This document shows positions 22,869 to 44,562 of a DNA stretch of 64,000 nt, in pieces. The stretch lies in contig JBLDXI010000025.1 in assembly GCA_047495785.1 (NCBI GenBank), forward strand, positions 992,001 through 1,056,000. The letters are read 5' to 3'. Positions within the stretch are counted from its first letter, which is position 1. Each line of letters starts with the position of its first letter. The notes under the pieces are model-generated. The model worked only from the letters and a program-made list of their open reading frames with translations, was not told the DNA's origin and made no database searches. Made by a program: the position numbers and the translations under genes. The DNA comes from Lepidodermella squamata. Its lineage: Eukaryota > Animalia > Gastrotricha.

Positions 22869-24318
22869 ATGGTGGCTTTTGCCCATTTACTTTCCGCTAG
22901 TTTGTTTCTCGGTGTGATTGCTTTATCACAAGCAATACAAATTTCGATAGAATCCCCTCGAAAGCCTCCGGCTCTCGAAGATGCTGAGCAGGATGCCGCT
23001 GCCCAGGCTTCATCGATTCGCGGTTTCACGCGTAAATTTTGAGTACCGGATGTTAGTTGGCAATAATTAGGCAATAATTAGGTCGCACAACGACTCGGAA
23101 ACCGACGAAGGTTGCGGTAGCGTCCGGATCTTCAGCTGCTAGTCGCCTGCTTTCTAGAAATTTGCCTTCAAATGAGACAGATAAAGCTGCGGCGACTAAG
23201 ACTACGACTACGACTACGACCGCAAAACCGACTACGACAACAACTACGACAAAGCCAACAACGACTACAACGACTACAACAACTACAACAACTACAACGA
23301 CAGCTAAAACTACTACGACGACTTCAAAACTTCTAGCGGCAGCTGCAGCGTCTGCCTCGACCACTGTCAAGCCGGCTAATGCCGGATGTGGCGTGAACAA
23401 ATACATTGGAGAAGGATATGCTTCGGTTCCACGCTCCAGAATTGTTGGCGGAACAAAGGCCGCGGATGTGGAATTTCCGTGGCAATCGTTCCTCCTAATA
23501 TACAGCCAAATCAACCAGGGGTACTACCTTTGTGGAGGCAGTCTTATTGACAAAAACTGGGTCATCACTGCTGGTCACTGTTGCGATCTGGCTTCGTCTG
23601 CTGGGTAAGAAGCTTTGACCAATAAGGATCATTTCAATCGTCGAAATTTCCAGAGATATCGTCGTGAGCCTTGGCAATAATACGCTATTTGACAGCGAAG
23701 GGTATCTCGCGAAGTTTCCTTATCAAAATTCAGCTACTCGCATGGTGAAACATAGCGGATACATTCCTGTAACGTACACCAACGATTACTGCCTTCTGCA
23801 AATACCAAGTGGGTTTTATGCTTGTAAACGAAATCGGAAAATCTGTGTGATTATATTAAATAGCTGTCAGTTTGTCCACGTGGAACATTCAACCGATCTG
23901 TTTGCCCAGGCAATGCGATTCTTCTTTCAAGGGAGAATGCGTTGCTGGTCAGAATGTCACTGCAAGTGGATGGGGCCACACTCAAACCGCAGGATCGCTG
24001 TCAAGCAATCTGAATTTTGTCCCGATTCCGATCGCCAATTTTGACGAATGCGCCCGTAAATTCGTCATGCCGCTCGACTCGAACAGTATGATGTGTGCTG
24101 GCGGTCTCGCGGGCCAGGGCGTCTGCCAGGGAGACTCGGGTGGTCCCCTGTCTTGCGTCTACAATGGCCGCCATTATTTAACGGGCATGGCTTCGTTTAA
24201 TGATGCAGAAGGCTGCGCCTTGACGAACATGCCTTCGGTATTTGCAAAAGTCTGCACCGTTCGCTCATGGATCGATTCAACGATGAGCACATCCCGTAGC
24301 ATCAACAGGCAGGGCTGA
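22869..24318 (+). CDS. Secreted S1A serine protease A with Thr-rich stalk; exons 22869-23022, 23082-23604, 23654-23808, 23864-24318
   Basis: Signal peptide MVAFAHLLSASLFLGVIALSQA; activation R|IVGG; triad TAGHC, NDYCLL, GDSGGP. Confidence 0.9.
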
Positions 24319-25343: not shown

Positions 25344-26841
25344 ATGGCATCTTATAGCATTTTGTTTTCCATAACACTAGTCTTAGGAAATACACTATTC
25401 CTTGCAGCCATCGAGATATATATTCAGGCTCCCCGAAAGCCTCCAGCACTCACTGTGACTAGAAATGCGAATGAACCCGCCGAAAGTAAGGCGCGTTTAG
25501 CTATTATAATAAATATTGGGATTGATTAATTTTTTCAGCTCGCCATCTAACCACCCGGAAACCAACGAGGGTTGTAATACCGCATAGTTATTCGGAGGGT
25601 CGCATTTTATCGAGGGACAGGGTTGGCTCTACGCTAAAGTCTTCGCGCACAACGACTACAAAGGCAACGACAACAAGAACTACGACTATTAAAACAACGA
25701 CTACCAGAACCGCAAGGATTACAACCACGGCACCTAGAACAGTCAAGCCAAAGCAGACTGGTGCCCCTAAAACCAAAACAACCACACAGTCCACCACCAC
25801 GACCACCACCCAGGCGAGTACTACAGAAACGACGACAACGACCCCTGCAACTACGGTAACCACAACAATTAAAGCCGCAATAGCTGGGTCACTGTCGACA
25901 GTAGTCAATCCAGCCGATGCCGGATGTGGCGTGAGCAAATACGTCGGAGAAGGGTACTCCTCAGTTCCACGCTCCAGAATTGTTGGCGGCACCAGAGCTG
26001 CTGAACTGGAATTCCCATGGCAATCGTTCCTTTTGATATACAGCCAAATAAACCAGGGCTATTTCATCTGCGGTGGCAGTCTCATCGATGAAACATGGGT
26101 GATCACTGCTGCCCACTGCTGCGACCTGGCCTCGTCGGCTGGGTGAGTTTCGCATGATGGACTAGCTTAATTACAAATTGTGATTTGCAGGGATATTACA
26201 GTCCATCTTGGCAACAATACTTTATTCGACAATATAGGGAACATCGGGCAGTTCCCATATCAGAATTCAGCTATACGTATGGTGAAACATAGCGGATACG
26301 TTCCAGTAACTTACACTAACGATTACTGCCTTCTTCAAGTTCCAAGTGAGATTTCGAAAGGGGTTTTGAAGGAGGTTAAATACATGTTCTTGAAATAGCT
26401 GTCAGTTTGACCACGTGGAACATTCAACCGATCTGTTTGCCCAGGCAATGCGATTCTTCGTTCAAGGGAGAATGCGTTGCTGGTCAGAATGTCACGGCAA
26501 GTGGATGGGGTCATACCCAAACCGCAGGATCGCTGTCAAGCAATCTGAATTTTGTCCCGATTCCGATCGCCAATTTTGACGAATGCGCCCGTAAATTCGT
26601 CATGCCGCTCGACTCGAACAGTATGATGTGTGCTGGCGGTCTCGCGGGCCAGGGTGTCTGTCAAGGGGACTCAGGCGGACCTCTTTCCTGTACGGTCGAA
26701 GGCCGCCACTACTTGACGGGCATGGCTTCGTTCAACGACGCGGAGGGATGCGCATTGCGCATGCCTTCCGTTTTTGCGAAAGTTTGCACTGTTCGCTCAT
26801 GGATTGATTCGACGATGAATAGCAACAGTAGACAAGGCTGA
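25344..26841 (+). CDS. Secreted S1A serine protease B (close paralog of A); exons 25344-25485, 25539-26142, 26191-26345, 26399-26841
   Basis: Signal peptide; Thr/Arg-rich stalk; RSR|IVGG; TAAHC, NDYCLL, GDSGGP; same intron positions as A. Confidence 0.9.
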
Positions 26842-27316
26842 GACAAAAGGTTCCATAGGTTCCCGACTGTCTGAAGGCATTCACTTATTGTTATATTCAA
26901 GCTTCCAATAAAACAACTAATCTTCATTGATCTTCCTTGAAACAAACTACGCATTCAAATTGTGACTACCAATTTCCCTATACTTCACATGACTCTCATA
27001 TCTCATAAAACAACAAGTTCTTTAGCTTTCTGAGTAGAGCCGGACATCGCAGGAGTGTATAAAAGAATCGGTGACACTAATTTCATCCATCAACAAATTT
27101 TATCTCGACTGTGATCTCGAATGTTATCGAGAATGTTGTTACAAAAAATGAAATTTAAGAAGTCAGAAAGCCGCGACACATCTTTCAGAGCGGACACAGC
27201 AATAAAATTGTAATTGCCAAATGACTACAAAGCATGTGAACACTAACATGACTGTGATGATGTGTGAAAGACTGCGCCTGAAGTTATTAATTGATGAGCA
27301 CTCGGGTTTAAACGAA

Positions 27317-27541
27317 ATGGTTTTAGCTTATGCAATTTTGAGCCCGATGTTTCTTGCTGTAGTAGTCTCTGCTTGTGCCTCGGGCATTCCGAGCACTCCG
27401 AACCCAGCAAGATCGATTTATGGCCAACAGCCAAACGTCATCACCCCCTCGCCTGGGCAGACTACGGCCAAGGACGTCAATTTGTACGATACCACAACGC
27501 AGCGACCATCGACGATAACTACCAGAAAGGATGGTGGCTGA
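27317..27541 (+). CDS. Small secreted Thr-rich protein 1 (novel motif family)
   Basis: From the internal Met: MVLAYAILSPMFLAVVVSA-C..., motif PNVITPSPGQTTAKDVNLYD shared with three neighbours; TATAAAAG at ~27058. Confidence 0.6.
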   Translation: MVLAYAILSPMFLAVVVSACASGIPSTPNPARSIYGQQPNVITPSPGQTTAKDVNLYDTTTQRPSTITTRKDGG

Positions 27542-28070
27542 AATAGATGTTGGCGTCCATGCTTTAGGTCTTAGCACAATCACAGCTAACTCATTTTGAA
27601 CGAAATAAATCGTCGAAAGGCACAAGTAGCTTTTGATTCAAGCCGATTTAGAAATATAATGGATTTTCGGAATGCTTCGATCGCCAAGGAAACATCTAGT
27701 TTTAACTTTTAGGGTTAAAATCGAAGCAAGGAAGCAAGGAAGCAAAGAAGTCATGGCCAAACGTGATCAGATGAACTTATTATCCCAGGTCTCAGGGCTT
27801 ACTTTTACCGTCGCTATTCCATTGAAGGTTGATATCGGACAATTTTAGCTGAATAGATGCGATACTTATGACTAAATAGTCATTTAAGGAGTTAAGACTG
27901 GGTTTTAAAAAACTGTGGTTACCTCGACACAGGGAACTGAAGAGTGTTAATAAGACGTGCTTCAATTAATGTAAGATGCCTTGCCTGCTTTGAAGATTCG
28001 TGGCTTTATTAATAAAGCCGCCAAAGATAACTGGCAATATACACAGTTCTTCTAATGCCGCAACAGGAGA

Positions 28071-28553
28071 ATGTTTACCGGGCCCGGTCTTTTAGCTGTT
28101 TTTATCCAGTTTATATGTGATCTCCCTACAGTTCAGGTTTGTGCATCATCGCCTGAGCCTGAGCGAAAGGTTGCTACAGATTCACCAGTGATAACGCCTC
28201 CGCCTTGGGCCACCCTTCCGACTGATCTTAACTTCGATGACAACTCTTCGACGAGTCAGGAAACTACTTCAATTTCGACAACAAAACTGCCGATGAGTTC
28301 AACTGCTGCTGCAATCACTACCGCCACGGCCATTACTACTACAACAACTAGCTCCACTAATCCAGCGAGCTCTACTACGATGCCAGCGTCTGTAACCACG
28401 ATGGCTACAACAAAAACTACAACTAATAAGGCTCCATCCTCTACTACTACCACCGCTAGTACTACTACTACAACTACTACAACTACTACTAAAGTTGCTA
28501 TGACTACTAATACCACGAGGGCAACAACAACACGTCGTCGCATGCCTGGTTGA
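28071..28553 (+). CDS. Small secreted Thr-rich protein 2 (novel motif family)
   Basis: Hydrophobic N-terminus, C, RKVATDSPVITPPPWATLPTDLNFDD, long Thr/Ser tract, ends TTRRRMPG. Confidence 0.75.
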   Translation: MFTGPGLLAVFIQFICDLPTVQVCASSPEPERKVATDSPVITPPPWATLPTDLNFDDNSSTSQETTSISTTKLPMSSTAAAITTATAITTTTTSSTNPASSTTMPASVTTMATTKTTTNKAPSSTTTTASTTTTTTTTTTKVAMTTNTTRATTTRRRMPG

Positions 28554-29457
28554 TGTCAAAACTACAGTAGAATGCGATCGGCTATATTTACACCTGGAAC
28601 AAATCGCTAGCGAACATTTTTTTGGTATTTTCTTTCAACTGGGCAAGCCGAATGACAAATTTCTCCATAGAGTCTGTTGCACATTCTGAGTAGCTAAAAG
28701 CCCTGATAGCTGCATACTTGAAATTGTTCAAAAGTCGTATCCAGCTTGGAAAAAGACAATTTTCATACTATTTCAACAAGAAGATTGATTTGCTGATTAT
28801 CTCAAGACCAATAGGTTTCACAAGTTGAGGCTTCGTTGGTTGAAATTTGATTGGCTATTCAAACGGATTTCATTCACCAATCTTCTTTTCGTTGCTATTA
28901 TGCTCGCCAAATTAGTGTATTATGCTCCTGGAAATTTTTGACTTGTTACATTGCTGCCATGTTGCTCGTTTGTTACAGTAGCCAAATATTAACAGATGAA
29001 AAACCCCATTGACTTAGCTCACGGCAAATATTAAAAAGGTGTAGGCGTGTATTTTTTCCGCGTTTATAAGCCAATGCTGTGACTTTTTTCAAACATAATG
29101 TGATTATCTTCGGGAGAAACATATATTATGAAAAAATCATCGCGAAATTCATCGGCACTTTCCACCGAGATGAAAGTCGAATGTATCTGCCCTTTTAGAT
29201 TTGGCCGCGGAACTTTCTCACATCTTAAACGTCAACTTTCATATCTGCCTATAAATGTTAGATTTCCGCAATTAATGCACTAGTTTCAAGATGTTTACAA
29301 CCACCAAGCACGCCACTGCAAAAGGCATGACGCTCATAAATGTTTCTGTAAAAAATGAAGCACTACACTAATGATCACGAAAGTAATGTTCATATACTGT
29401 GTACCTGTTTCACATTCAGCATTATGTTGATTCTACTCGGAGAATTAGAAAACTAGA

Positions 29458-29760
29458 ATGATGTCAAGCAACCTGATGGTATTAACAGCAGTTATTACGA
29501 TGCAACTTGCACCATTTGTCGATCTCTGCCAATCAGTATCCGACGATCGCAAGAAAGTGACTGATCCACCGGAGATAACCCTGCCGCCTGGCGAGTCCAC
29601 GCCGAAAGACTTTGATTACAACGAATTGTCAACGGCAACACCACCTAAAACTGCAGCGCCGACTACAACAACTACAACAACAAAAGGTACTACAACAACC
29701 ACTACCACTACTACTACGAGGCCCACTACTAGTCGCACTACACGGAGAACTGGAAGATAA
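29458..29760 (+). CDS. Small secreted Thr-rich protein 3 (novel motif family)
   Basis: Hydrophobic N-terminus, CQ, RKKVTDPPEITLPPGESTPKDFDYNE, poly-Thr, ends TTRRTGR. Confidence 0.75.
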   Translation: MMSSNLMVLTAVITMQLAPFVDLCQSVSDDRKKVTDPPEITLPPGESTPKDFDYNELSTATPPKTAAPTTTTTTTKGTTTTTTTTTTRPTTSRTTRRTGR

Positions 29761-30097
29761 TTCATAACTATCTTAAATTAAAGAATTGTTTAATAATATC
29801 AGCCGTATAAAACAAATGCCAGTCAACTATTTGAGATCATTGACAGACAGACAGCCTTAACAGCAAATAACCAAAATAGCAGATGAGACAAAACAGCTAG
29901 ATCATGTAAAAAGAGTGTTTTCGCTGTCATGTCGCAAGTAAAAAAATTTGATTTTCTTCGCTTTCGCTGTTATGCGCTATTGCAAGGAAAAATCAACAGG
30001 TCAGAAAAATCGACTTTTTGCCTCTCCGACGCCTTGGTACTCCTTACGGGAGATCTCAGGTCATCTTGGTGAACTCTCTCGATCTCCAACCGTATTT

Positions 30098-30354
30098 CTG
30101 GAAGCTTCTAATAATGATTTTCAAATTCTCCGTACTCGATTTAGTAACCAATGATCTGTTACAGAGATCTCGACCGCCCAAAGTCATTCGACGAAAAGGT
30201 GTTACTGGTTAAGATGACACCCTAACCCACCCAAACTAAAGTTGACTGATGAAGATCTCCTGAGACTCACTATTTGAAGATGAACCCGCTAAAACATCCT
30301 TGCTTTACTAAATCGAGTACGGACAATTTGAAAATCAATATTAGAAGCTTCCAG
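30098..30354. repeat. Inverted repeat (~50-bp arms, ~155-bp spacer), probable MITE/foldback remnant
   Basis: 30098-30147 CTGGAAGCTTCTAATAATGATTTTCAAATTCTCCGTACTCGATTTAGTAA is the reverse complement of 30305-30354 with 2 mismatches. Confidence 0.75.
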
Positions 30355-30936
30355 GAGCTTCATCCTCCGCTGCGATATTTTGAGATTTTCCGGGAAAACG
30401 GGGAACTTTGAACCCGACTTTTTCTTATCGAATTTCCTATTCAAAAGGCATTCAACGCTGCAGTTTCGGCGAATCGGCGCTATACAGTCTACATTTGTTG
30501 TAGGAACGACGCGGCGCATGGAGTAAACCTGGGCTACTGCTGCCGCGGAAGATCTTTTCGTGGTGGGGTGCTGAGAAAACATCGATAGCTCAACTATTTA
30601 GTAACGAATAAGAATCATATGCGGTCAAATCTTCTGGCAGTGGTCTTGCAAATTGTTCTAAACGGCTTGGGATTTTGAGGATTTCGGGGTCACTGACGTT
30701 CCAAAGACACGTGATGGCACTCGCCAAATCCTAATCCTAATTCCTAATTATTCATTGGCAGATAAGACTATTCTTGACTCGGTCGTGGCGAGATTTCATG
30801 CTCATCTTGTTGTAAAAACCTCTGAAGTCAATAATTGAGATAGAGTGACGAAAGCACGAAAAACTTTTGAATACTTACACACGCTGCATAAAAACTTACT
30901 ATCAAAGCTGTACAAATTACAAATTCACGCCAATAA

Positions 30937-31194
30937 ATGTTGCTGCTACGTGGATCAACTAGGCTAGCTCTCATCATGCTCCTACCAACTGTTTACCTTT
31001 GTCAACCTGACCCAGGACGAATACGGCCGACAGATCACCCAGTAATCACATCTCCTCCTGGAGCAAGGCCACCAGTCGACAGAAATCCTGATGACACAAC
31101 TCCATTTGACGTTATACCTGATTGGAGGTTCCTCTCAAGTCTGACGGAAATTAAGTCAACTCCAACCCCAGAAAACGGCAATGTTCCAAAATGA
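30937..31194 (+). CDS. Small secreted protein 4 (novel motif family, lacks long Thr tract)
   Basis: MLLLRGSTRLALIMLLPTVYL-CQ, RIRPTDHPVITSPPGARPPVDRNPDD; AATAAA just downstream. Confidence 0.7.
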   Translation: MLLLRGSTRLALIMLLPTVYLCQPDPGRIRPTDHPVITSPPGARPPVDRNPDDTTPFDVIPDWRFLSSLTEIKSTPTPENGNVPK

Positions 31195-31248
31195 AATTTT
31201 AATGAATTTAGATTAATAAATTGCTTTCAAATAAGTAAAGCGTTTGTC

Positions 31249-32564
31249 TCATAACTCGAAAAGTTTCTCTTTAGCTTCTGCGGGCAGTAGTCTAACCGGA
31301 GATTTCAGGATACCTCGTAGCAGCCTCTCAAAGTCGAGGGTAATCAATTGGCAGATCCTGCATATCTTGCGGCAAGCATCTGTTGACATGGTTGTTCTTC
31401 GTAGATTACCACTGCTTAGATTGCTATTCAACTCTGAGATAACATCCAACGCCTGAGCGATTGTTTCACATCGACCGAGCTCGAATAGAAGGACAGGGGG
31501 ATTGTAACACAGCCGAAAGATTTCTTGCTCTCGCCAGTTTTTCAAGCCATGAATCGCAGTTTGACAGACCTTGGCTAGGCGCTTCTCTTTAGCACAAGCA
31601 GGTGCTGTAAGGTCACGAATAACTTGGGCGATCTTGTCAATCGAGAATGAATCGCCCAGTCTCTGCTCGATGATCTCCTTCAGAACTGCTGATTCATCTG
31701 AATTGATTGTTGCACTGCTGCTTGAAGTTCCCAGCCTTTCTTTATCGCGCGGTGGCAGAATCGAGTCGAGCTTCATTATGATCGGCAGGCTGGCCTCGAC
31801 TCGAAAGAAATTGAAGATGTTGTAAAGAATCTCAACAACACAAGTTCGCATATCGTCGAACGCTGTCATAACAGCTTCGTTGCAGTAGGGGAGGAGCATT
31901 CCTCCCAAAATGTTTTCTGACTCCTGTTTGACCATTTCCAGAGCCTCACGGGTTCTATCAAAGGGGGCCTTGTTTCTCCCTGAGTTATCTATTTGAATTT
32001 CGCTGAAATGTGATTCCATTTAGAATTCGATTATGTGTAAATGAAATATTCAACTTACCCTAGGTCGTCTGGAGGCCAGAGGGTTTCTTTCTGGGCTTCT
32101 TCCGGAGGTTTCACCTCAGATTCGCGCGATGGCATAGCATCTAAAATAATTGTCTCAGTGAGAGCAAATACATTGTCATTTGCTTCGGCTCGAACAAATA
32201 TGTTCTCTGGCTCAGTCTGAAGTTCACCATCAATTTTCTCGTTTGCTGAGCTCTCAGTCATTACATGAGCAGTTGGCGTCAAATTTTCTTGCACAGGTTT
32301 GAGCTCTGACAGAGACGATGTTTGGTCAATCGATTTGCCAGGCTCAGATGGTGACTGATCGATGATCGCATCAGTTGATAGCTTTTCACTTTTGATTTCA
32401 GCATTACTGCCGTCATTAATAATTGATGGCTCTTGATTCGCAGCGGAAACACTTTCAGAATTAGGTATCGCTTCGGATGAATTCAAATCGCTGTGAGCAT
32501 TGCTGGAGAGAACCCTAATATCCGCCGATACTGAAGAAGCTTCTTGCAAATCCAAAGAACTCAT
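31249..32564 (-). CDS. Hypothetical protein; acidic Ser-rich N-terminus plus predicted helical C-terminal domain; exons 32564-32059, 32002-31249
   Basis: Two long ORFs joined in frame by a 56-nt GTAAG...TTTCAG intron; no recognised domain. Confidence 0.65.
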
Positions 32565-33060
32565 CAATATGGTTGGAGGTTAAACTTGTATCTCTGTAGG
32601 AAAGAAATGTGAGTTCAATGGCTCAGAGAAATGCGAATGAATGGAAGATGAGCGTTTTATTCATCTCTTGCGAATTAAGTTTTTTTCATGCGTGCAATTC
32701 AATCGATAAAACACAGCTGTGGCTTTTGATTGACACGTATGCAGCTTTTGTTCACCTAACAACTCCAGGGACTACGAATAAGTTCAAACGCCCAATTGCA
32801 TTATTATGAGGATAAATTTGGAAGGAGGAGGCGAACAGGTTTTACCATTTACAACAAGTTTAATTGCTATGAGTAAGCGGAAACCGTGTAGGTAAATTGA
32901 CCTGTGATGCCTGCTAGGTTCATCAAATTGCTGCCAGCTTCTTCCAGCCTATTGTAAACATAAGAACGTGCGTGACGGCGAAGACACGTTCTTGTCCGTG
33001 TTAGCTTCTCTTAAGAACGACAATGCATGGAAAGAGAGATAAAAGTCGTGTCTTTAAAAA

Positions 33061-34834
33061 ATGAGGAAAGTTTTGAAGTTGCTACTACTGATACTACTGA
33101 TAGGGTTGCTTGATTTTGCGGATAGGGTGAGTGGTTGCCAGATTTCTCAAACTCCGGCAAGAGGAAAAGAGACTTCGCAGACAACAACAACAACAACTAC
33201 TACTACTACAACGACCACAACGAAACCTACAACAAAAACTGTTTCCTCGACGTCAACCTCAACAACCAGAGCCCCTTCGACAACACCTAGCACAGCAGCA
33301 GCATCAACCCCGACTACAACATCTTCTTCAACAACTCCTAGCACTACTACAACGACTGCTTCAACAACGGCCTCATCGGCTACCACTAGCTCTTCAGCGA
33401 CCACTGCTAGCACTACAGTAACGATAACCACCCCAACAACTACTACAACTACTACTACTACTACACCTGCTCCAACAACCACAACGACTACGACTACAAC
33501 CCCAGCACCAACCACCACTACTACTTCAACTACGACCCCAACCCCAACAACCACTACTTCAACTACTCCTGCTCCAACAACCACAACCACTACGACTACA
33601 ACCCAAACCCCAACTACCACTACTACTTCAACTACGACCCCAACCCCAACAACCACTACTTCAACTACTCCTGCTCCAACAACCACAACCACTACGACTA
33701 CAACCCAAACCCCAACTACCACTACAACTACGACCCCAACACCAACAACCACTACTTCAACTACTCCTGCTCCAACAACCACAACCACTACGACTACAAC
33801 CCCAGCACCAACTACTACTACTACTACAACTACTACTACGACTACAACAACTACCACCCCAGGGTCAACGACTCAGACTTATACTAACCGATGCGGCCAT
33901 ACTCAGTACAACAACTCGGGAGAATCCGCTGGTAGCACCTATAGGATCGTTGGAGGAGTGAATGCTTTGACCAATGAGTTCCCATGGCAGTCATTCCTCT
34001 ACATTTACTCGAGAACGGCAAAGAGTTACTACCTATGTGGCGGAAGTTTAATCAGTGATTCTTGGGTATAGGCTCTGAACTCCGAATTCGACCCATTATC
34101 TCAAAATGCCTTTTTTAACAGATATTAACTGCAGCCCATTGCTGTGTGTTGGCTACTGTAGGCTCAGATATACAGGTCTATCTCGGTGGAGCGAATTTGA
34201 GCCTACCCTTTGCCTATGGAAGGAGCGCACTATCTATGACAGTACATGCAGATTACAACAAATCTGGGCGGACAGAAAATGACATATGCTTGCTGAAAAT
34301 CCCGAGTGAGTAGGGTTAAGCTATCAGGTTTTATTTCATTGCGTAATTCTTTTGTTTAGCTGTGGCATTGACATCATGGTCGATCCAACCGATTTGCCTC
34401 CCGTTAGACTGTAGTAGTACCTACGAATGCCAGGCTGGCACGAATGCAATTGCGTCCGGCTGGGGCTTAACTGCAACTAGTTAGTCAAAAATTCTAACAG
34501 ATTCTATCATTTTGATGATTCTCTGTCCCTAATAGATGGTTACACGTCCACAATGTTGAAATGGGTGAAACTGCCTGTAATCGATTGGAATGCCTGTAAG
34601 AGTTTTTGGTCCATTCTAACCAGTGGCCAAGTCTGCGCTGGAGGCATCAATCTAGAAGGAGTGTGCCAAGGTGATTCGGGCGGTCCGTTGACCTGTGTTA
34701 TCGATGGGAGGAGCGTCATAAATGGTATAACTTCATACGGATCAGCCGCTGGGTGTGCCCTCAGCAATGTCCCGAACGTTTTCACGCGAGTTTGCCAATA
34801 CAAGGCGTGGATTGATTCAGTAATGCAGGCATGA
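33061..34834 (+). CDS. Secreted S1A serine protease C with ~230-aa PTS mucin stalk; exons 33061-34065, 34122-34305, 34360-34479, 34536-34834
   Basis: Signal peptide; (T)nPAP/PTP repeats; YR|IVGG; TAAHCC, NDICLL, GDSGGP. Confidence 0.9.
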
Positions 34835-36988: not shown

Positions 36989-37958
36989 TTAGGCCTTGAC
37001 GTAAGGCGTTTTCAGATTATAATTTCCAGCAGGGCCATAGTTGCAAGCAATAAGGACTTGATCCTTAGTCTTGTAACCATTGAAAGGACTTTCGGCGACA
37101 GGGGGGCTGCAAACAGCCACTCCACATCCAATATGAGTCGTGTTGTCCCACACAAGTTGCGTGTAGTGACCGACGACCTTGCCATTGATAGAGCCAGTGC
37201 CGTGTTTGAAGTCGATTCGCTCATCGGCCCAAAGGTCGATAGCGTCGATGATAACACGGCTAACGTCGAATGGTGCAGTTGCAAGGTAGAGATTCTGACC
37301 AACAGCCGACCAGCCCTGTTTATTCAGATTCGTGCGATTTTTCCCAGCATCATGGCTGTAATTGCACTGCGCTGCCCATCTGAAAGGTCCGAGAATACTA
37401 AGTACTTCAAATAGATTTTTCACGCTTCCTACCTTTCTGCAGTTGCTGCAAGATCATCATCCCATTGGAGAATGGCCATGCTTCTAGCTTTGGGATCAAC
37501 ATTTTGACGCCAGCAGTTGTGGCGGTCGACGGCTTGACTCTGTGAAACAGCGACCAAATCCTTGAGATTAGCAGCGTCCTCCAAACACCGAGATGGGGCA
37601 TCATAACCTCCTTTGTTACATTGATTCTGAGAAAAACAATGAAGCACGTCATAACTCAAAAGAATGAATTCCTAACCCCTCTTCTTGGACCGCTGTATGG
37701 GCCTACGTATGGCAAATTTTCTTGGCAAGGAGCGTTTTCGAAACCCTTACAAACAGGAACAGGCTGAAGCCATGCCCCATTAACGCATTGAATGGTCCCG
37801 CCACCACCTGACTGACAGGTGTAGGTCACAAACATGCCTTGGCTGTTTGATTTCCATGATGACTTGTAGCCACCAGGAATGCGCTCAGGAACAGCAGGGC
37901 AGCTAACTGCAGCTTCAACGGCTACCAAAGCAGATGCTAGGATGAAAGCTGAAATCAT
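36989..37958 (-). CDS. Secreted Sushi/CCP + CAP (SCP/TAPS) domain protein; exons 37958-37677, 37626-37433, 37379-36989
   Basis: Signal peptide; CCP-like C...YTC...C.NGAW..PVPVC; CAP motifs HNCWR, LQWDDDLAATAERWA, GQNLY, GHYTQLVWDNTTHIGCG, CNYGPAGN. Confidence 0.9.
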
Positions 37959-38126: not shown

Positions 38127-41100
38127 TTAGAAAAATGTAGAATCACCGTCGCTTTTTGACTCTATGAAAGATGTGGTTGAGGCCTCAGTCGCTGTTCCTG
38201 AAGAATTTCCAGGCGACAAAGACAGCTTGCGTTTTAGCTTGGCGAGGCCAGACAACTTTTGACATGTCAAACGGCGCTTGGCCGCTCTGACTAATTTCGG
38301 GCTAAGGCTCTGCAGAAGCGGGCTAATAGCTGCGTTGAAATAGACAAAGCCTAGGGCGATAACAAAGTAAGAAGATTGTGTTGAATAGCGGTAAGTGCCT
38401 ATGGCTTGATATATGGTCACGGCATTGATTGGAGTCGAACAAACTGGAAAAAATGAAATAACATTTATTGAAATTGAAAGTTTTAATGAGCTTACCAATG
38501 AAAAGCACGACGATTATAATCATAAGCTTGGTCAGAAAAACTTCCCGCCTTCTGCATCTAGCATAGGCTGCTGAGGCCGAGTGGAGCCGATCTCGGAAGT
38601 TTGAAGTTTGACTCGAATTACTAAGTTTAGCCTTGAAGAAAGTCGAAGCCACTGTTGCGAATGATACATTCTGCTCCAGTCCAGCTATCGAGTTCGACTT
38701 CTGCCTTTTGAAGATGATAGGCTCTCTAAAGCTATTGTTCGTTGTACTGGCAGACTCTTTCAGCAGAGGTGAGGACGACTGCCTTTCACCCATTGACGAA
38801 CTTGAGTTCAGAGGTGCGTTCGATATTGGCTCTGGTAACGAAGATCTACTTCGAGGATTGAACTTTTTCGTCATTGCTCGTATTGAAGACATTATTCTCA
38901 GATAATTCACAAGGATCAGCGGAACTGGAACCAATACAGTTGCAATCAGCAAGGTCCCGGCTTGAATTGCGGATCCTGAAGTGGAGCGCTGGCCTCCTAA
39001 AGGAATGCGCCAGTTGAAAACGGAACAAACGTGAACCATGTCGTCATCAGCTCCAAATTTCGCACCGGGGACTTTTACCTGCCTCACCTCTGCAACGCCC
39101 ATGACGAAGTAAGGAATCGACCAGATAGATATGTCCATTATAGCGAGAACTGATAATATATGAGATTCTTATTCGGCACCTTTCGGCACCTTTCGGCACC
39201 ATTCGGCACCATTCGGCACCCGTCGGCACCCTTCGGCACCCTTCGGCACCATCTGCCTTAACTACCGCTTACACACCGCGGCAAGACAGTAGCGCGCGCA
39301 GATGACATATAATTACGCAAGAAAATTACTTATCTAATGCGTATCGCTTACATGTACATACATTGTCATAGGAAATAAATAAGTACAAGTAAGATGTTTA
39401 CGCTGTTTAGCGCTTTTTTCCAATCTAGGCGCGCGTATTTTGTTACGAACAAAGGCGCGCAGTAATCGCCGGTTACGGCATAGGTAGCCAGTTACGGCAT
39501 AATTAGCAGGTTACGGCAACTCGCTATTCGCAGAGCAGGGAATAACAGCCGTTGAAAAAGTATTTGTGCATTATGTATAGCGCATTATTTGAATTTTGCC
39601 AATATTCCTTCCGTTTTGAAATACACGCGGTTTTTACCTGCTGTGAAACAGTGCGATATCCAACCCATTCTATCCAAATTTCATGAATATCGTTTATTTT
39701 AGAAATCCCTGTCCATAAATCCTTTCCGCGCTGACGTTACCATCTCGGATCCCTAGATGCTGCATATACTCCTAGCATGCCTATAACAAATTTATTCTTC
39801 CATTCATTATTGAGCAGTGTTTTCATGAGACGTACTATGAGATGTCGTAGCTTGGAGAAAAGCAGAAGAACAGGGATTTTTTTATAATTTTTGCGATCTT
39901 GAGCTTTCATCATCATCATCTTTGAGGGATTGCGGGCTTCGAAGCCGCAGCGCCTATATGAAATACGTCTCATGATTTTTGTCTGGCCCATGCTATCACT
40001 ATCTTTTTAAATGGTTTCGCAATCGCTGCACATTTTTTTCGCATTTTTTGATGCGCTAACCGTTATCGTTTCAATAGCAATTTTTTCTCCTCCGAGCCTT
40101 GTTATTACCGTATTACCGCGCTTCGAGTGTCATTCCACTATAGCTCGTTTTATAGTGACATGTCACTATGCCCCGTTTATAGTGACATGCCAGATTAAAT
40201 TTCAATGCAAAACATTAGGTGCCACTATAATCGAGGTAAATGAAAACCTGTCAAAAACCATGTTTCACTTTATAGTGGCATGACACTCAAAGCGCGGTAA
40301 TACGGTATGCATCTTCTTACTTAAATTTTATCGTAAAACTGTATTGCTCTCAAGCTCTGATTTCCAGGCTTCAGAAAGCAAAGGAAAGCTTTTTGTTGAA
40401 TCTGTTGACAGTTCAAATCAGCTTCAAATTATAATAAATGAAGAGAGAATTGAGATAAGGTCGTGTTGAAAGTTTGTTTGTCTTGATTTGAGTCGAATTT
40501 TGCCACCATTTGGTCAGGTCGACAACCCCTCCGATGTCATTCTGATGTGGGTCCTATGATTCCAATAGTATTGAGTTAGCAGTTAGCATGTGCTCTTTGG
40601 TCTTTGGTATCTTCACTTTGTGCGATTGAAATGGTAGGAAAAGTTATTTTTGCGTTAGCTATAATCTTGCTCCTACTAAAACTGTGTGTCACTACAACTC
40701 TTGGTTGGTTCTAGGTTGGAACGCGGTGCGGAATGAGGTTGAAATTTGAGTGGCGGATTGATTTCACCTCTGATATCTAGACGAATTGAATGTCCGCTAA
40801 AGCACATATGACTAATTAAAGAATCCGTTTCGTCCCATTGGAAGCTGAATGAGCCAGTACTATACCCGGGTCGCAGTTGAAATTTTATGCGAAAAACGGT
40901 ATTCGGTCTGCCAGTACAATATTTCAAAAGGGAGGAAGTAATTAGCCGGCAGATTCAAAGCTCTAAAATTTGGGATCGTTTAGGCCGGCGTTAGTCAGGG
41001 TGCCTTCCCAATATACGTTACTCATAGCGAAGAATTGACCTATTTGTGGCAGAATCCATTAAAAGACACCGCTTCTCCCGCCAAAAACGTGAGGAAGCGA

Positions 41101-42232
41101 AGCCTAAATCATTTCCTGTTGTAAGAATAGCAATGAAGTTAGATACGCTCACTTGCTATGCCAAGTGCTTTTATGTGAAAGATTCCTGATTCGCCACAAC
41201 CTTGACCAGAACAGCATGAGAATTCGCTCAGGGTTTTGAAGCAAAGACGCGAGATTCCAACGACATTTCGTAAAATCACGTTTATCAGAAGCTAGCGCCG
41301 CAAAAGAAATTATTATTCAAAAAAATGCTGAGCCTTTAGCAGCTACGAGCTACATCAGCATTCGGTGCCTAGTGGTCGCGCTTGTATTAAAAAATGTGCG
41401 GTTGAAATAATTTAAAGGTTCCAACATGGCTCTAAGCACGGCTTTCCTGATTGATTTGAATAAAATAAAATAAAATGCAAATAGTACGCTGATGACATGA
41501 CCTCTTGCCATTTTATCTATCTTTTTCAGCCAAATGCTAACGTTGCAGGAGTGTATTAATAAAAACGGTACTAAATAGACAACAGTCTAGCTTCTTCCCC
41601 ACCTTTTAAAGATATTTTCAGCACCGCATAGCGTTGATTCGTCGAATACCGCAGTAAATTTGAAGATTCTGCTTTCCGTGCCAAAAATATAAAAAGCTGC
41701 CCACGAATTATCTAACTGATAGAGTCACTGCGACAAATTGCATTGTTAGCTGTTTAGATTTGTCGCGATTTGTTATACAAATCCTGCGTTCAATGCTTAT
41801 GAGGCACATTATCCAGAACGACATGCAGACAGTGGCAATGGAGCCGTAGAACCAAGTTACGCAGCCCCATTCGCCTAGAGGCCAATCGTCGGATAGGCGA
41901 ACTATCGCCACCATCAAACCAAGGAGACAAAATGCGATGTTACAAGTTGCCAAAGCGATGACAAGGAGCAGGAAAGCTGGTCGAACTTTACGTTGTTTGA
42001 AGTTGTAGACTGCAAGAATGTTAGAAGGAATTCCAGCTAAGCATATGATTCCTATCACCGCTGCCTCCAAAAACGGCAGGAAGAAGTTGTCGCGATTCAA
42101 TTGAGTTAGGAACAAGAACCACCATCTAGGTTCAGGCCAGCCGCGTTCCGGAAGAGCCGTGCAAATCCACGACTGGCCAACAGCACCTCCCGCATCGAGC
42201 GGGCATGGTTGTGACAAATTTTGTTTCGACAT
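38127..42232 (-). CDS. Class A (rhodopsin-like) orphan GPCR; segments 42232-~41717, ~39150-38496, 38443-38127; first junction does not splice in frame canonically
   Basis: TM1 GIPSN, ECL1 DWPLGEWGC, TM3 ISIERR, TM4 WSIP, TM5 VPVPLILVNYLRI, TM6 FIVCSTP, TM7 FNAAISP. Confidence 0.8.
39172..39250. repeat. 10-bp minisatellite (nTTCGGCACC) x8
   Basis: Directly visible at the edge of the GPCR interruption. Confidence 0.9.
40106..40307. mobile_element. 202-bp pogo-type MITE
   Basis: TACCGTATTACCGCGCTTCGAGTGTCATTCCACTATA at the left and its reverse complement (2 mismatches) ending ...GGTAATACGGTA at the right; TA flanks; same TACCGTA terminus as the right end of the 95-543 element. Confidence 0.85.
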
Positions 42233-43160: not shown

Positions 43161-44562
43161 ATGCTTGTTACACTGACCTTGGTCTTTATCGCATCTGGCA
43201 TAGCAGATGCATGCCAGGGGACGTCTTCTCGTGCGTTATCTAGAGCCCAGAGTGCGGACAATCTCGGTCTAGCTGATGCTAACGCAGTGTGGACGCCTAC
43301 GACTACAACGTCTACGTCGATGGGAACACAGTCCCAGAGCATGACGACGACAACAACAACGACTAGAGCGCCCCCTGCAACTTTGTGGACATGGATGCCA
43401 CCAACACTTAACGTCACTTTGTTTACAAACACTGCCGCTCCTACCACGACTGCTTCTTCCACAATGATGACTATGAATGGTTCAACAGTTTCCACACCGA
43501 CAACTAGCTCATCTGCAAGAACCTCCACAGTAGCTTCGACAGTAGTTTCAACCACGGTCACTCAACCGTCTCCAACTACGACGCAGACTTCTACCACAAC
43601 CGCTACACCTGTGGTTTGCGGCAGGACTAGATATTCTGAAGGAGTCACTGCGAGGATCGTAGGCGGGGATAATGCTCGGCCAGGCGAATTTCCGTGGCAA
43701 GCTCAGTTGCGAATCTACGATGTGACCAACAACAGAAGACTCGGCTGTGGAGGAACTCTGATTCACCCTTTATGGGTAATTTAAGGATAATTTGAGGAGT
43801 TATTAGTAAATATATCGTTAGGCTGAAGTGTTCTAGACTAATTTTATCTGACATTTTCGAATAATCACAGGTATTAACCGCTGGTCATTGTTGTCTCAGC
43901 GAATCAACGATCTTGGTCAGTTTGGGGGATTCGTCAGATCGATACGAACTACCAGCTTTACAAGCAATCCGACATCCCCAGTTCTCGCAAAATCTCACCG
44001 GGCTAACGAATGATATATGCCTACTGAAAATCAGAGGTTGTAATATTCTTTTTTCTTGTCCATTTCATAATGCTTGGCTCAAATTTCAGAGCCTAACATG
44101 ACATCATGGTCAATCAGACCAATTTGCCTTCCTTCCGATTGTGGACCTTCCAGCGAATGCCAGCCGGGTCAAAATGTTGTCCTATCAGGATTCGGTTTGA
44201 CAGAAACAAGTATGCCGCTGTATAACTGATCACTCTGATATCATTTTTCGTTTTCTTTAGATGGTAACTCTAGCGCCCAACTGAAATACGTGCAAAATCA
44301 AGTGGTTTCAAGAGAGCGATGTTCGAGATACTGGACCCAAATTGATGACTCAAAACTATGCGCTGGGGGTGAATGGGGAAAGGGTGTTTGTAACGGCGAC
44401 TCTGGAGGACCAGCGGCTTGCAACATAGACGGCCGCTATGTCTTGAATGGCGTTGTTTCCTATGGCTCAGTTTTCGGATGTGCTCTCAACGAGCTGCCAG
44501 CCATTTTCGAGCGAGTCTGTTTCTACATAAATTGGATACGCTCTATAACTGGCTTGTCTTAA
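43161..44562 (+). CDS. Secreted S1A serine protease D with Thr/Ser stalk; exons 43161-43775, 43871-44036, 44090-44209, 44261-44562
   Basis: Signal peptide MLVTLTLVFIASGIADA; AR|IVGG; TAGHCC, NDICLL, GDSGGP; intron positions as in protease C. Confidence 0.9.

Follow-up and report, generated by a model that had tools for sequence, protein, structure and literature searches.

What do four small open reading frames (ORFs), arrayed in tandem near a set of protease genes in the gastrotrich Lepidodermella squamata, encode, and are they genes at all? The ORFs occupy positions 27317-31194, all on the + strand, of a 64-kb window of contig JBLDXI010000025.1, where the window is the whole stretch of DNA that was analyzed and positions are counted from its first letter. 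A sequence-only reading had described them as a family of small secreted proteins with a conserved motif that it did not recognize. Our analysis shows that the four genes are a real, lineage-restricted tandem family, new as a family and of a familiar kind. We consider it probable that this family encodes small exported, intrinsically disordered glycoproteins of the mucin type, each with a conserved linear motif that we refer to as the head.

Four tandem genes share a hydrophobic leader and a conserved head

The family consists of small gene A (27317-27541, 74 amino acids (aa)), small gene B (28071-28553, 160 aa), small gene C (29458-29760, 100 aa) and small gene D (30937-31194, 85 aa). All four ORFs are found in the tandem, same-strand arrangement reported earlier, with start-to-start distances of 754, 1387 and 1479 nucleotides (nt) from A through D. 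B, C and D have open frames of 165, 103 and 85 aa, respectively, and an in-frame stop only 0-5 codons ahead of the ATG, so the start is not arbitrary. For small gene A, an upstream in-frame ATG at 27221 provides an alternative start that would lengthen the product to 106 aa. Each of the four ORFs has a hydrophobic segment within its first 20 residues, where the best 10-residue Kyte-Doolittle mean is 2.5-2.7, consistent with the secretory-type leaders that had been proposed.

Alignment of the four copies reveals a head of ~40 residues, running from a Cys to an acidic cluster, with the consensus C(A/Q)S.P.P.RK..TD.PVITPPPG...P.D.N.DD. The head is encoded on the + strand at 27374-27499 in A, 28140-28265 in B, 29527-29652 in C and 31000-31125 in D, and these copies score 66.7, 76.4, 77.8 and 70.6 bits, respectively, in a profile search of the genome. 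Columns occupied by C, R, P, I, T, P and D are identical in all four. Across the copies the core reads TDSPVITPPPW, TDPPEITLPPG, TDHPVITSPPG and QQPNVITPSPG. The last of these belongs to small gene A, whose head (QQPNVITPSPG...DVNLYD) is divergent; those of B, C and D read ERKVATDSPVITPPPWATLPTDLNFDD, DRKKVTDPPEITLPPGESTPKDFDYNE and GRIRPTDHPVITSPPGARPPVDRNPDD, respectively. At the invariant Arg that precedes the head motif the residues are RK, RKK, RIR or R, and the site is dibasic in B and C. Within the acidic D.N.D cluster, a Tyr is flanked by acids in small genes A and C, not in B or D.

What follows the head differs from one member to the next. The Thr tract is near nil in A, spans ~35 aa in C and extends to a Thr/Ser tract of ~95 aa in B; small gene D has no Thr tract and carries a 35-aa tail of its own. 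Small genes A, B, C and D contain 10, 51, 30 and 9 Thr, respectively, with B also holding 18 Ser and 14 Pro among its 160 residues, and C reaching its 30 Thr in 100 residues. The earlier description of a conserved motif followed by a Thr tract of nearly none to ~95 aa is thus confirmed. Codons ACT, ACA, ACC and ACG are mixed in the Thr/Ser tract of B, and the Thr of C likewise draw on several codons; neither tract is a pure microsatellite. Three members end in a basic patch with Gly exactly as first quoted (TTRKDGG in A, TTRRRMPG in B and TTRRTGR in C), and D terminates in NGNVPK without a basic end. A C-terminal hydrophobic segment is absent from the four proteins.

The single aligned Cys (Cys20 in A, Cys24 in B and C, Cys22 in D) had been placed at the mature N-terminus. 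Its presence in all four members holds, but its mature position does not follow: under the -3/-1 rule, as judged by eye, it could occupy +1, -1, -2 or -3 of the leader cleavage site. The Cys of B (VCA|SS) and of C (CQS|VS) is more likely removed along with the leader. In A and D, it may either close the leader or open the mature chain.

The four genes are old duplicates kept as protein

Profiles built from three heads were run on the 2,057 stop-to-stop six-frame pieces of the window, leaving out each copy in turn. In all four runs the omitted copy ranks right behind the three training copies, with E-values of 3.7e-10 for B, 8.5e-5 for D, 3.9e-4 for A and 0.34 for C, and the best unrelated piece reaches an E-value of 1.7-4.2. 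The likeness of the four heads is beyond chance.

Comparison of the copies at the DNA level indicates how this likeness has been kept. Synonymous sites are saturated, with a proportion of synonymous differences (pS) of 0.64-0.86 versus a proportion of nonsynonymous differences (pN) of 0.38-0.54, and pN is significantly below pS in five of the six pairs of small genes (Fisher p < 0.05). Identity at codon positions 1, 2 and 3 is 0.53, 0.63 and 0.29, respectively, versus the 0.26 expected from base composition. That is to say, third positions are random where first and second positions are kept, and the four small genes are therefore old tandem duplicates retained only in their protein-coding reading. 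This upholds the claim that the DNA has diverged with the motif kept, implying selection. No k-mer is common to the upstream 300 nt of the four small genes beyond shuffled controls; since these flanks share nothing, only the coding frame is conserved. Codon usage was scored with a table trained on the long ORFs of the window, and the annotated frame is the best of six in every ORF. All four ORFs far exceed the intergenic mean (-0.39 +/- 0.22), and small gene A, the B head and the C head lie at or above the intergenic maximum.

These measurements bear directly on whether the four could be non-functional, that is, fortuitous or decaying ORFs in intergenic DNA. The genes are known from DNA sequence alone, no protein collection searched holds a match, and Thr-codon repeats by themselves remain open in several frames, each of which would suit such an origin. 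We regard it as highly improbable: four ORFs are intact and carry a leader and the same head in the same order, and the codon-position pattern, the recovery of each omitted copy, the codon-usage score of the annotated frame and the unshared flanks all speak against it.

Four alternative first exons, with leaders spliced to common downstream exons, were also considered and rejected. Each ORF stops without a consistent donor, the next downstream gene (31249-32567) is convergent on the minus strand, and the protease gene beyond it, protease C, has a leader of its own.

The head matches no known family

To what extent does the head occur elsewhere? Neither a full-length profile nor a head-only profile finds further family members in the 121-Mb genome of the animal itself, and the back-translated pattern D.P.IT.PP adds to the known copies no more than a single chance match, out of frame. 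Pfam-A contains no family that reaches the cut-off for the four proteins, the only matches being two of low complexity for C with E > 2. NCBIfam gives no match for the four, nor does a profile search of PDB sequences. The ESM Atlas, queried with small protein D and the B head, returns no usable match or cluster, and a word-index protein search returns no match for whole D or for residues 1-64 of B. An exhaustive HMMER search with the head profile over 1.84 billion representative proteins produces two matches only, both dismissed as artefacts of repetition, one being a satellite-like ORF whose every repeat contains YPVITSS once and the other a bacterial protein built of IPWESLPEDF repeats. For the B head and D, JGI metagenome contigs contain pattern matches and no tblastn relatives. 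Rfam shows no family over 22-34 kb of the window. The sequence-only reading was thus right to leave the motif unassigned, given the lack of a matching family in Pfam, NCBIfam, PDB sequences and the 1.84 billion representatives. Two likenesses, to a Bowman-Birk-like inhibitor loop and to the calcineurin PxIxIT motif, were dismissed given the lack of a constraining disulfide, the wrong spacing and the extracellular context.

On exact look-up the four small ORFs are absent from the protein collection, and so are six other ORFs of the window that served as controls, one of them an aldose 1-epimerase, which makes the look-up uninformative. The source genome, and probably the phylum too, is thus barely represented. 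Because the collection also lacks the control ORFs, the absence of relatives carries limited weight.

Probable disordered glycoproteins with a linear tip motif

To learn more about the form of the products, small protein D was modeled in AlphaFold2 with the four-row alignment. The model has a mean predicted local distance difference test (pLDDT) of 57 and a predicted template modeling score (pTM) of 0.16, and the leader and one four-residue turn are its only helical parts. The mature part of D is best read as intrinsically disordered, in which case the conserved head would be a short linear motif rather than a domain.

A mode of action can be proposed in which the products are secreted, processed and glycosylated, each step being predicted from sequence. 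The hydrophobic leader would send the product into the secretory pathway, where a furin/PC-type convertase may trim the short segment up to the invariant Arg and so expose the head. The proline/acidic linear motif of ~25 residues comes next, and its invariant Thr, in a T-x-P-P context, is a candidate O-GalNAc site; a Pro context favors O-glycosylation under the general preferences of GalNAc-transferases. The Thr tract, variable in length from 0 to ~95 residues, would be densely O-glycosylated and form either hydrated bulk or a stiff spacer. Given that this length varies freely between paralogues, the exact tract sequence appears to be unimportant. The basic C-terminal patch of three members could act as a second processing site or as an electrostatic anchor. 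The head would be the working part, either a glycopeptide epitope or a docking site for some partner, for instance a lectin, a protease or a matrix component, and the stalk would merely present it. Any such partner is a guess.

Several observations weigh against this proposal. The Thr tract is so short in A and D that the term mucin suits only B and C, and the features common to all four members are the leader and the head only. Glycosylation, cleavage at the Arg and the existence of a partner are all inferred from sequence context. The family is known from its ORFs and has no representative in the protein collection, which also misses the control ORFs of the window. Small gene C is recovered weakly when left out (E-value 0.34, rank 4 of 2057), and the protein-guided alignment itself raises first- and second-position identity somewhat. 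Signals for expression are likewise uneven. AATAAA occurs at 27604 after small gene A and at 31215 after small gene D, and small gene C has TATAAAT at 29250 and ATTAAA at 29777; small gene B has no recognizable poly(A) signal within 400 nt, and a TATA-like box accompanies only A and C of the four.

The basic sites that suggest processing also raise the question of whether the four are precursors of processed peptides, such as hormones, neuropeptides or pheromone-like messengers. Once the leader is off, a convertase would release them by cutting behind the conserved Arg or dibasic pair and again at the RR or RK near the C-terminus, the terminal Gly (..MPG, ..DGG, ..TGR) could serve as amide donor, and the head would form the bioactive N-terminal end, with the rhodopsin-type G protein-coupled receptor (GPCR) 7-11 kb downstream as one conceivable receptor. 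Consistent with this, the Arg just ahead of the head is invariant and dibasic in B and C, a basic cluster with Gly closes three of the four proteins, C and D have a Gln behind the Cys that could become pyroglutamate if cleavage falls at C|Q, and the receptor gene (7tm_1) is present at 38127-42232 on the minus strand. However, no cleavage site bounds the head on its C-terminal side, where the variable Thr tract intervenes, and a mature product with 0 to 95 Thr is unlike known peptide messengers. Small gene D has no basic end, and its Arg precedes Pro, which makes a poor convertase site. Proximity of a GPCR is no evidence of pairing. We judge the peptide-precursor account to be unlikely; as a possible reading, a prohormone-like role fits worse than that of an epitope at the tip of a mucin stalk.

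Comparison with known systems places disordered, mucin-type glycoproteins of this sort in familiar company. The Drosophila 68C glue genes Sgs-3, Sgs-7 and Sgs-8 form a tandem cluster of small mucin-type secreted proteins with a Thr repeat of variable length. Both loci are tight clusters of small paralogues that share a common leader and a short conserved module, and in both the Thr-rich tract ranges from long in one member to missing in others; the products are secreted and the tract O-glycosylated in the glue proteins, and both are predicted here. The likeness does not extend to sequence. Sgs proteins have a Cys-rich C-terminal module; the small proteins instead have a Pro/acidic head and just one Cys, close to where the leader would be cleaved.

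A second parallel, by analogy only, concerns the head. PSGL-1 displays an N-terminal epitope on a mucin stalk, and its propeptide is cut off at a basic site just ahead of that epitope. In both PSGL-1 and podoplanin, and in the arrangement proposed for the small proteins, a mucin stalk carries at its N-terminal end a short acidic, Pro-flanked motif with a key O-glycosylated Thr; in the two known proteins this motif is read by a C-type lectin-like receptor. The PLAG motif of podoplanin, EDxxVTPG, binds CLEC-2 through an O-glycosylated Thr and acidic residues (PMC4826181). The head departs from the EDxxVTPG or ED(x)xxT consensus in that it has no Glu-Asp pair and is spaced D-x-P-x-I-T-x-P-P-G. 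In contrast to podoplanin, a transmembrane sialomucin, the small proteins also have no transmembrane anchor, and the head profile matches no PDB chain. Extending the analogy, the four might be processed, gastrotrich-specific glycopeptide ligands that, much like PSGL-1 and podoplanin, present a conserved O-glycosylated PxITxPPG...DxNxD tip on a mucin stalk, here of graded length, read by a dedicated lectin-like receptor or acting as regulators or substrate mimics of the adjacent non-tryptic Thr-stalk proteases. This is a long shot. If it were true, the locus would be a self-contained extracellular recognition module.

If expressed, the four genes provide a clean case of a compact animal genome making new secreted proteins, following a recipe of a leader, a selected 25-residue linear motif and a Thr tract free to lengthen or shrink from one paralogue to the next. 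For gastrotrich biology the four would also be candidate markers of a secretory cell type (such as mucus, cuticle or adhesive glands), with a short, synthesizable motif for tests of binding partners. No long-standing question is opened. With one sequenced genome in the phylum, orphan secreted families are to be expected, and poorly sampled animals commonly have secreted families restricted to their lineage.

Relationship to the neighboring Thr-stalk proteases

Two tandem genes for trypsin-fold proteases (Pfam Trypsin) lie upstream on the same strand, protease A at 22869-24318 and protease B at 25344-26841. Are the small genes stalk-only derivatives of such Thr-stalk proteases, in which the leader and stalk were kept and the catalytic exons lost, leaving decoys, partners or nothing of use? 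Their position would suit this origin: the small genes sit directly downstream of proteases A and B and upstream of protease C, all on one strand. Proteases C and D also open, as the sequence-only reading had pointed out, with a leader, Cys-Gln at its end and then a Thr tract. By eye there is a loose likeness of the form C/I-Q-x-S-..-P-x-R-K (IQISIESPRK in protease A, CQISQTPARGK in protease C), too short for a test.

Closer comparison does not bear out this derivation. Scored with a profile of the four small-protein N-termini, from leader through basic site, the first exon of each protease falls at noise level: rank 659 for A, 93 for B, 388 for C and 1305 for D among 1533 pieces (E >= 64). 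The head profile finds nothing in the protease first exons, and the PxITxPPG head occurs in no protease exon. The small proteins have no catalytic domain, and neither protease-domain remnants nor pieces resembling the motif remain between the small genes. DNA likeness to the protease stalks consists of 60-77% matches of the low-complexity ACN (Thr) repeat, in other words composition, and no promoter word is common to small genes and proteases beyond shuffled controls. Purifying selection on the head speaks against dead fragments, which are unlikely because of that signal. A common origin of small genes and proteases is neither shown nor excluded; descent as stalk-only derivatives strikes us as quite unlikely.

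The proteases themselves present features of separate interest. Proteases A and B have diverged unevenly, with 94% DNA identity in the last exon, 71% in the stalk and first protease exon and 78% in the middle exon, a pattern that could reflect gene conversion or differing constraint along the gene. In the trypsin-fold proteases, Gly rather than Asp stands six residues ahead of the catalytic Ser (24093-24200, 26628-26700), so they are probably not specific for Arg or Lys. Their activation site, PRSRIVGG (23420-23450), nevertheless follows an Arg, implying that another protease activates them. Protease C has by far the longest stalk in the cluster, ~270 Thr/Pro residues that its first exon (33061-34071) encodes in imperfect repeats of ~27-33 nt (TTTPAPTTTTTT...).

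Other features of the locus

Several further genes follow the array. The convergent minus-strand gene at 31249-32567 comprises two ORFs (pieces of 256 and 170 aa). It matches no Pfam family, and a word search with the 256-aa ORF is blank, the full spliced protein being probably over the length filter. Its stop lies only 55 nt from that of small gene D, and the 3' untranslated regions (UTRs) of the two therefore probably overlap. Farther downstream, a CAP-domain exon is found at 36989-37423 on the minus strand, ahead of the GPCR gene, and protease D begins at 43161 beyond it.

Inspection of the DNA between small genes C and D reveals a dispersed repeat of ~370 bp (29987-30356), which accounts for the wider spacing there. 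The repeat has at least 40 scored copies genome-wide, on many contigs, at 68-87% identity. It contains terminal-type inverted arms of 50 nt (30098-30147 and 30305-30354) that are 96% complementary, and it is an inserted element resembling a miniature inverted-repeat transposable element (MITE).

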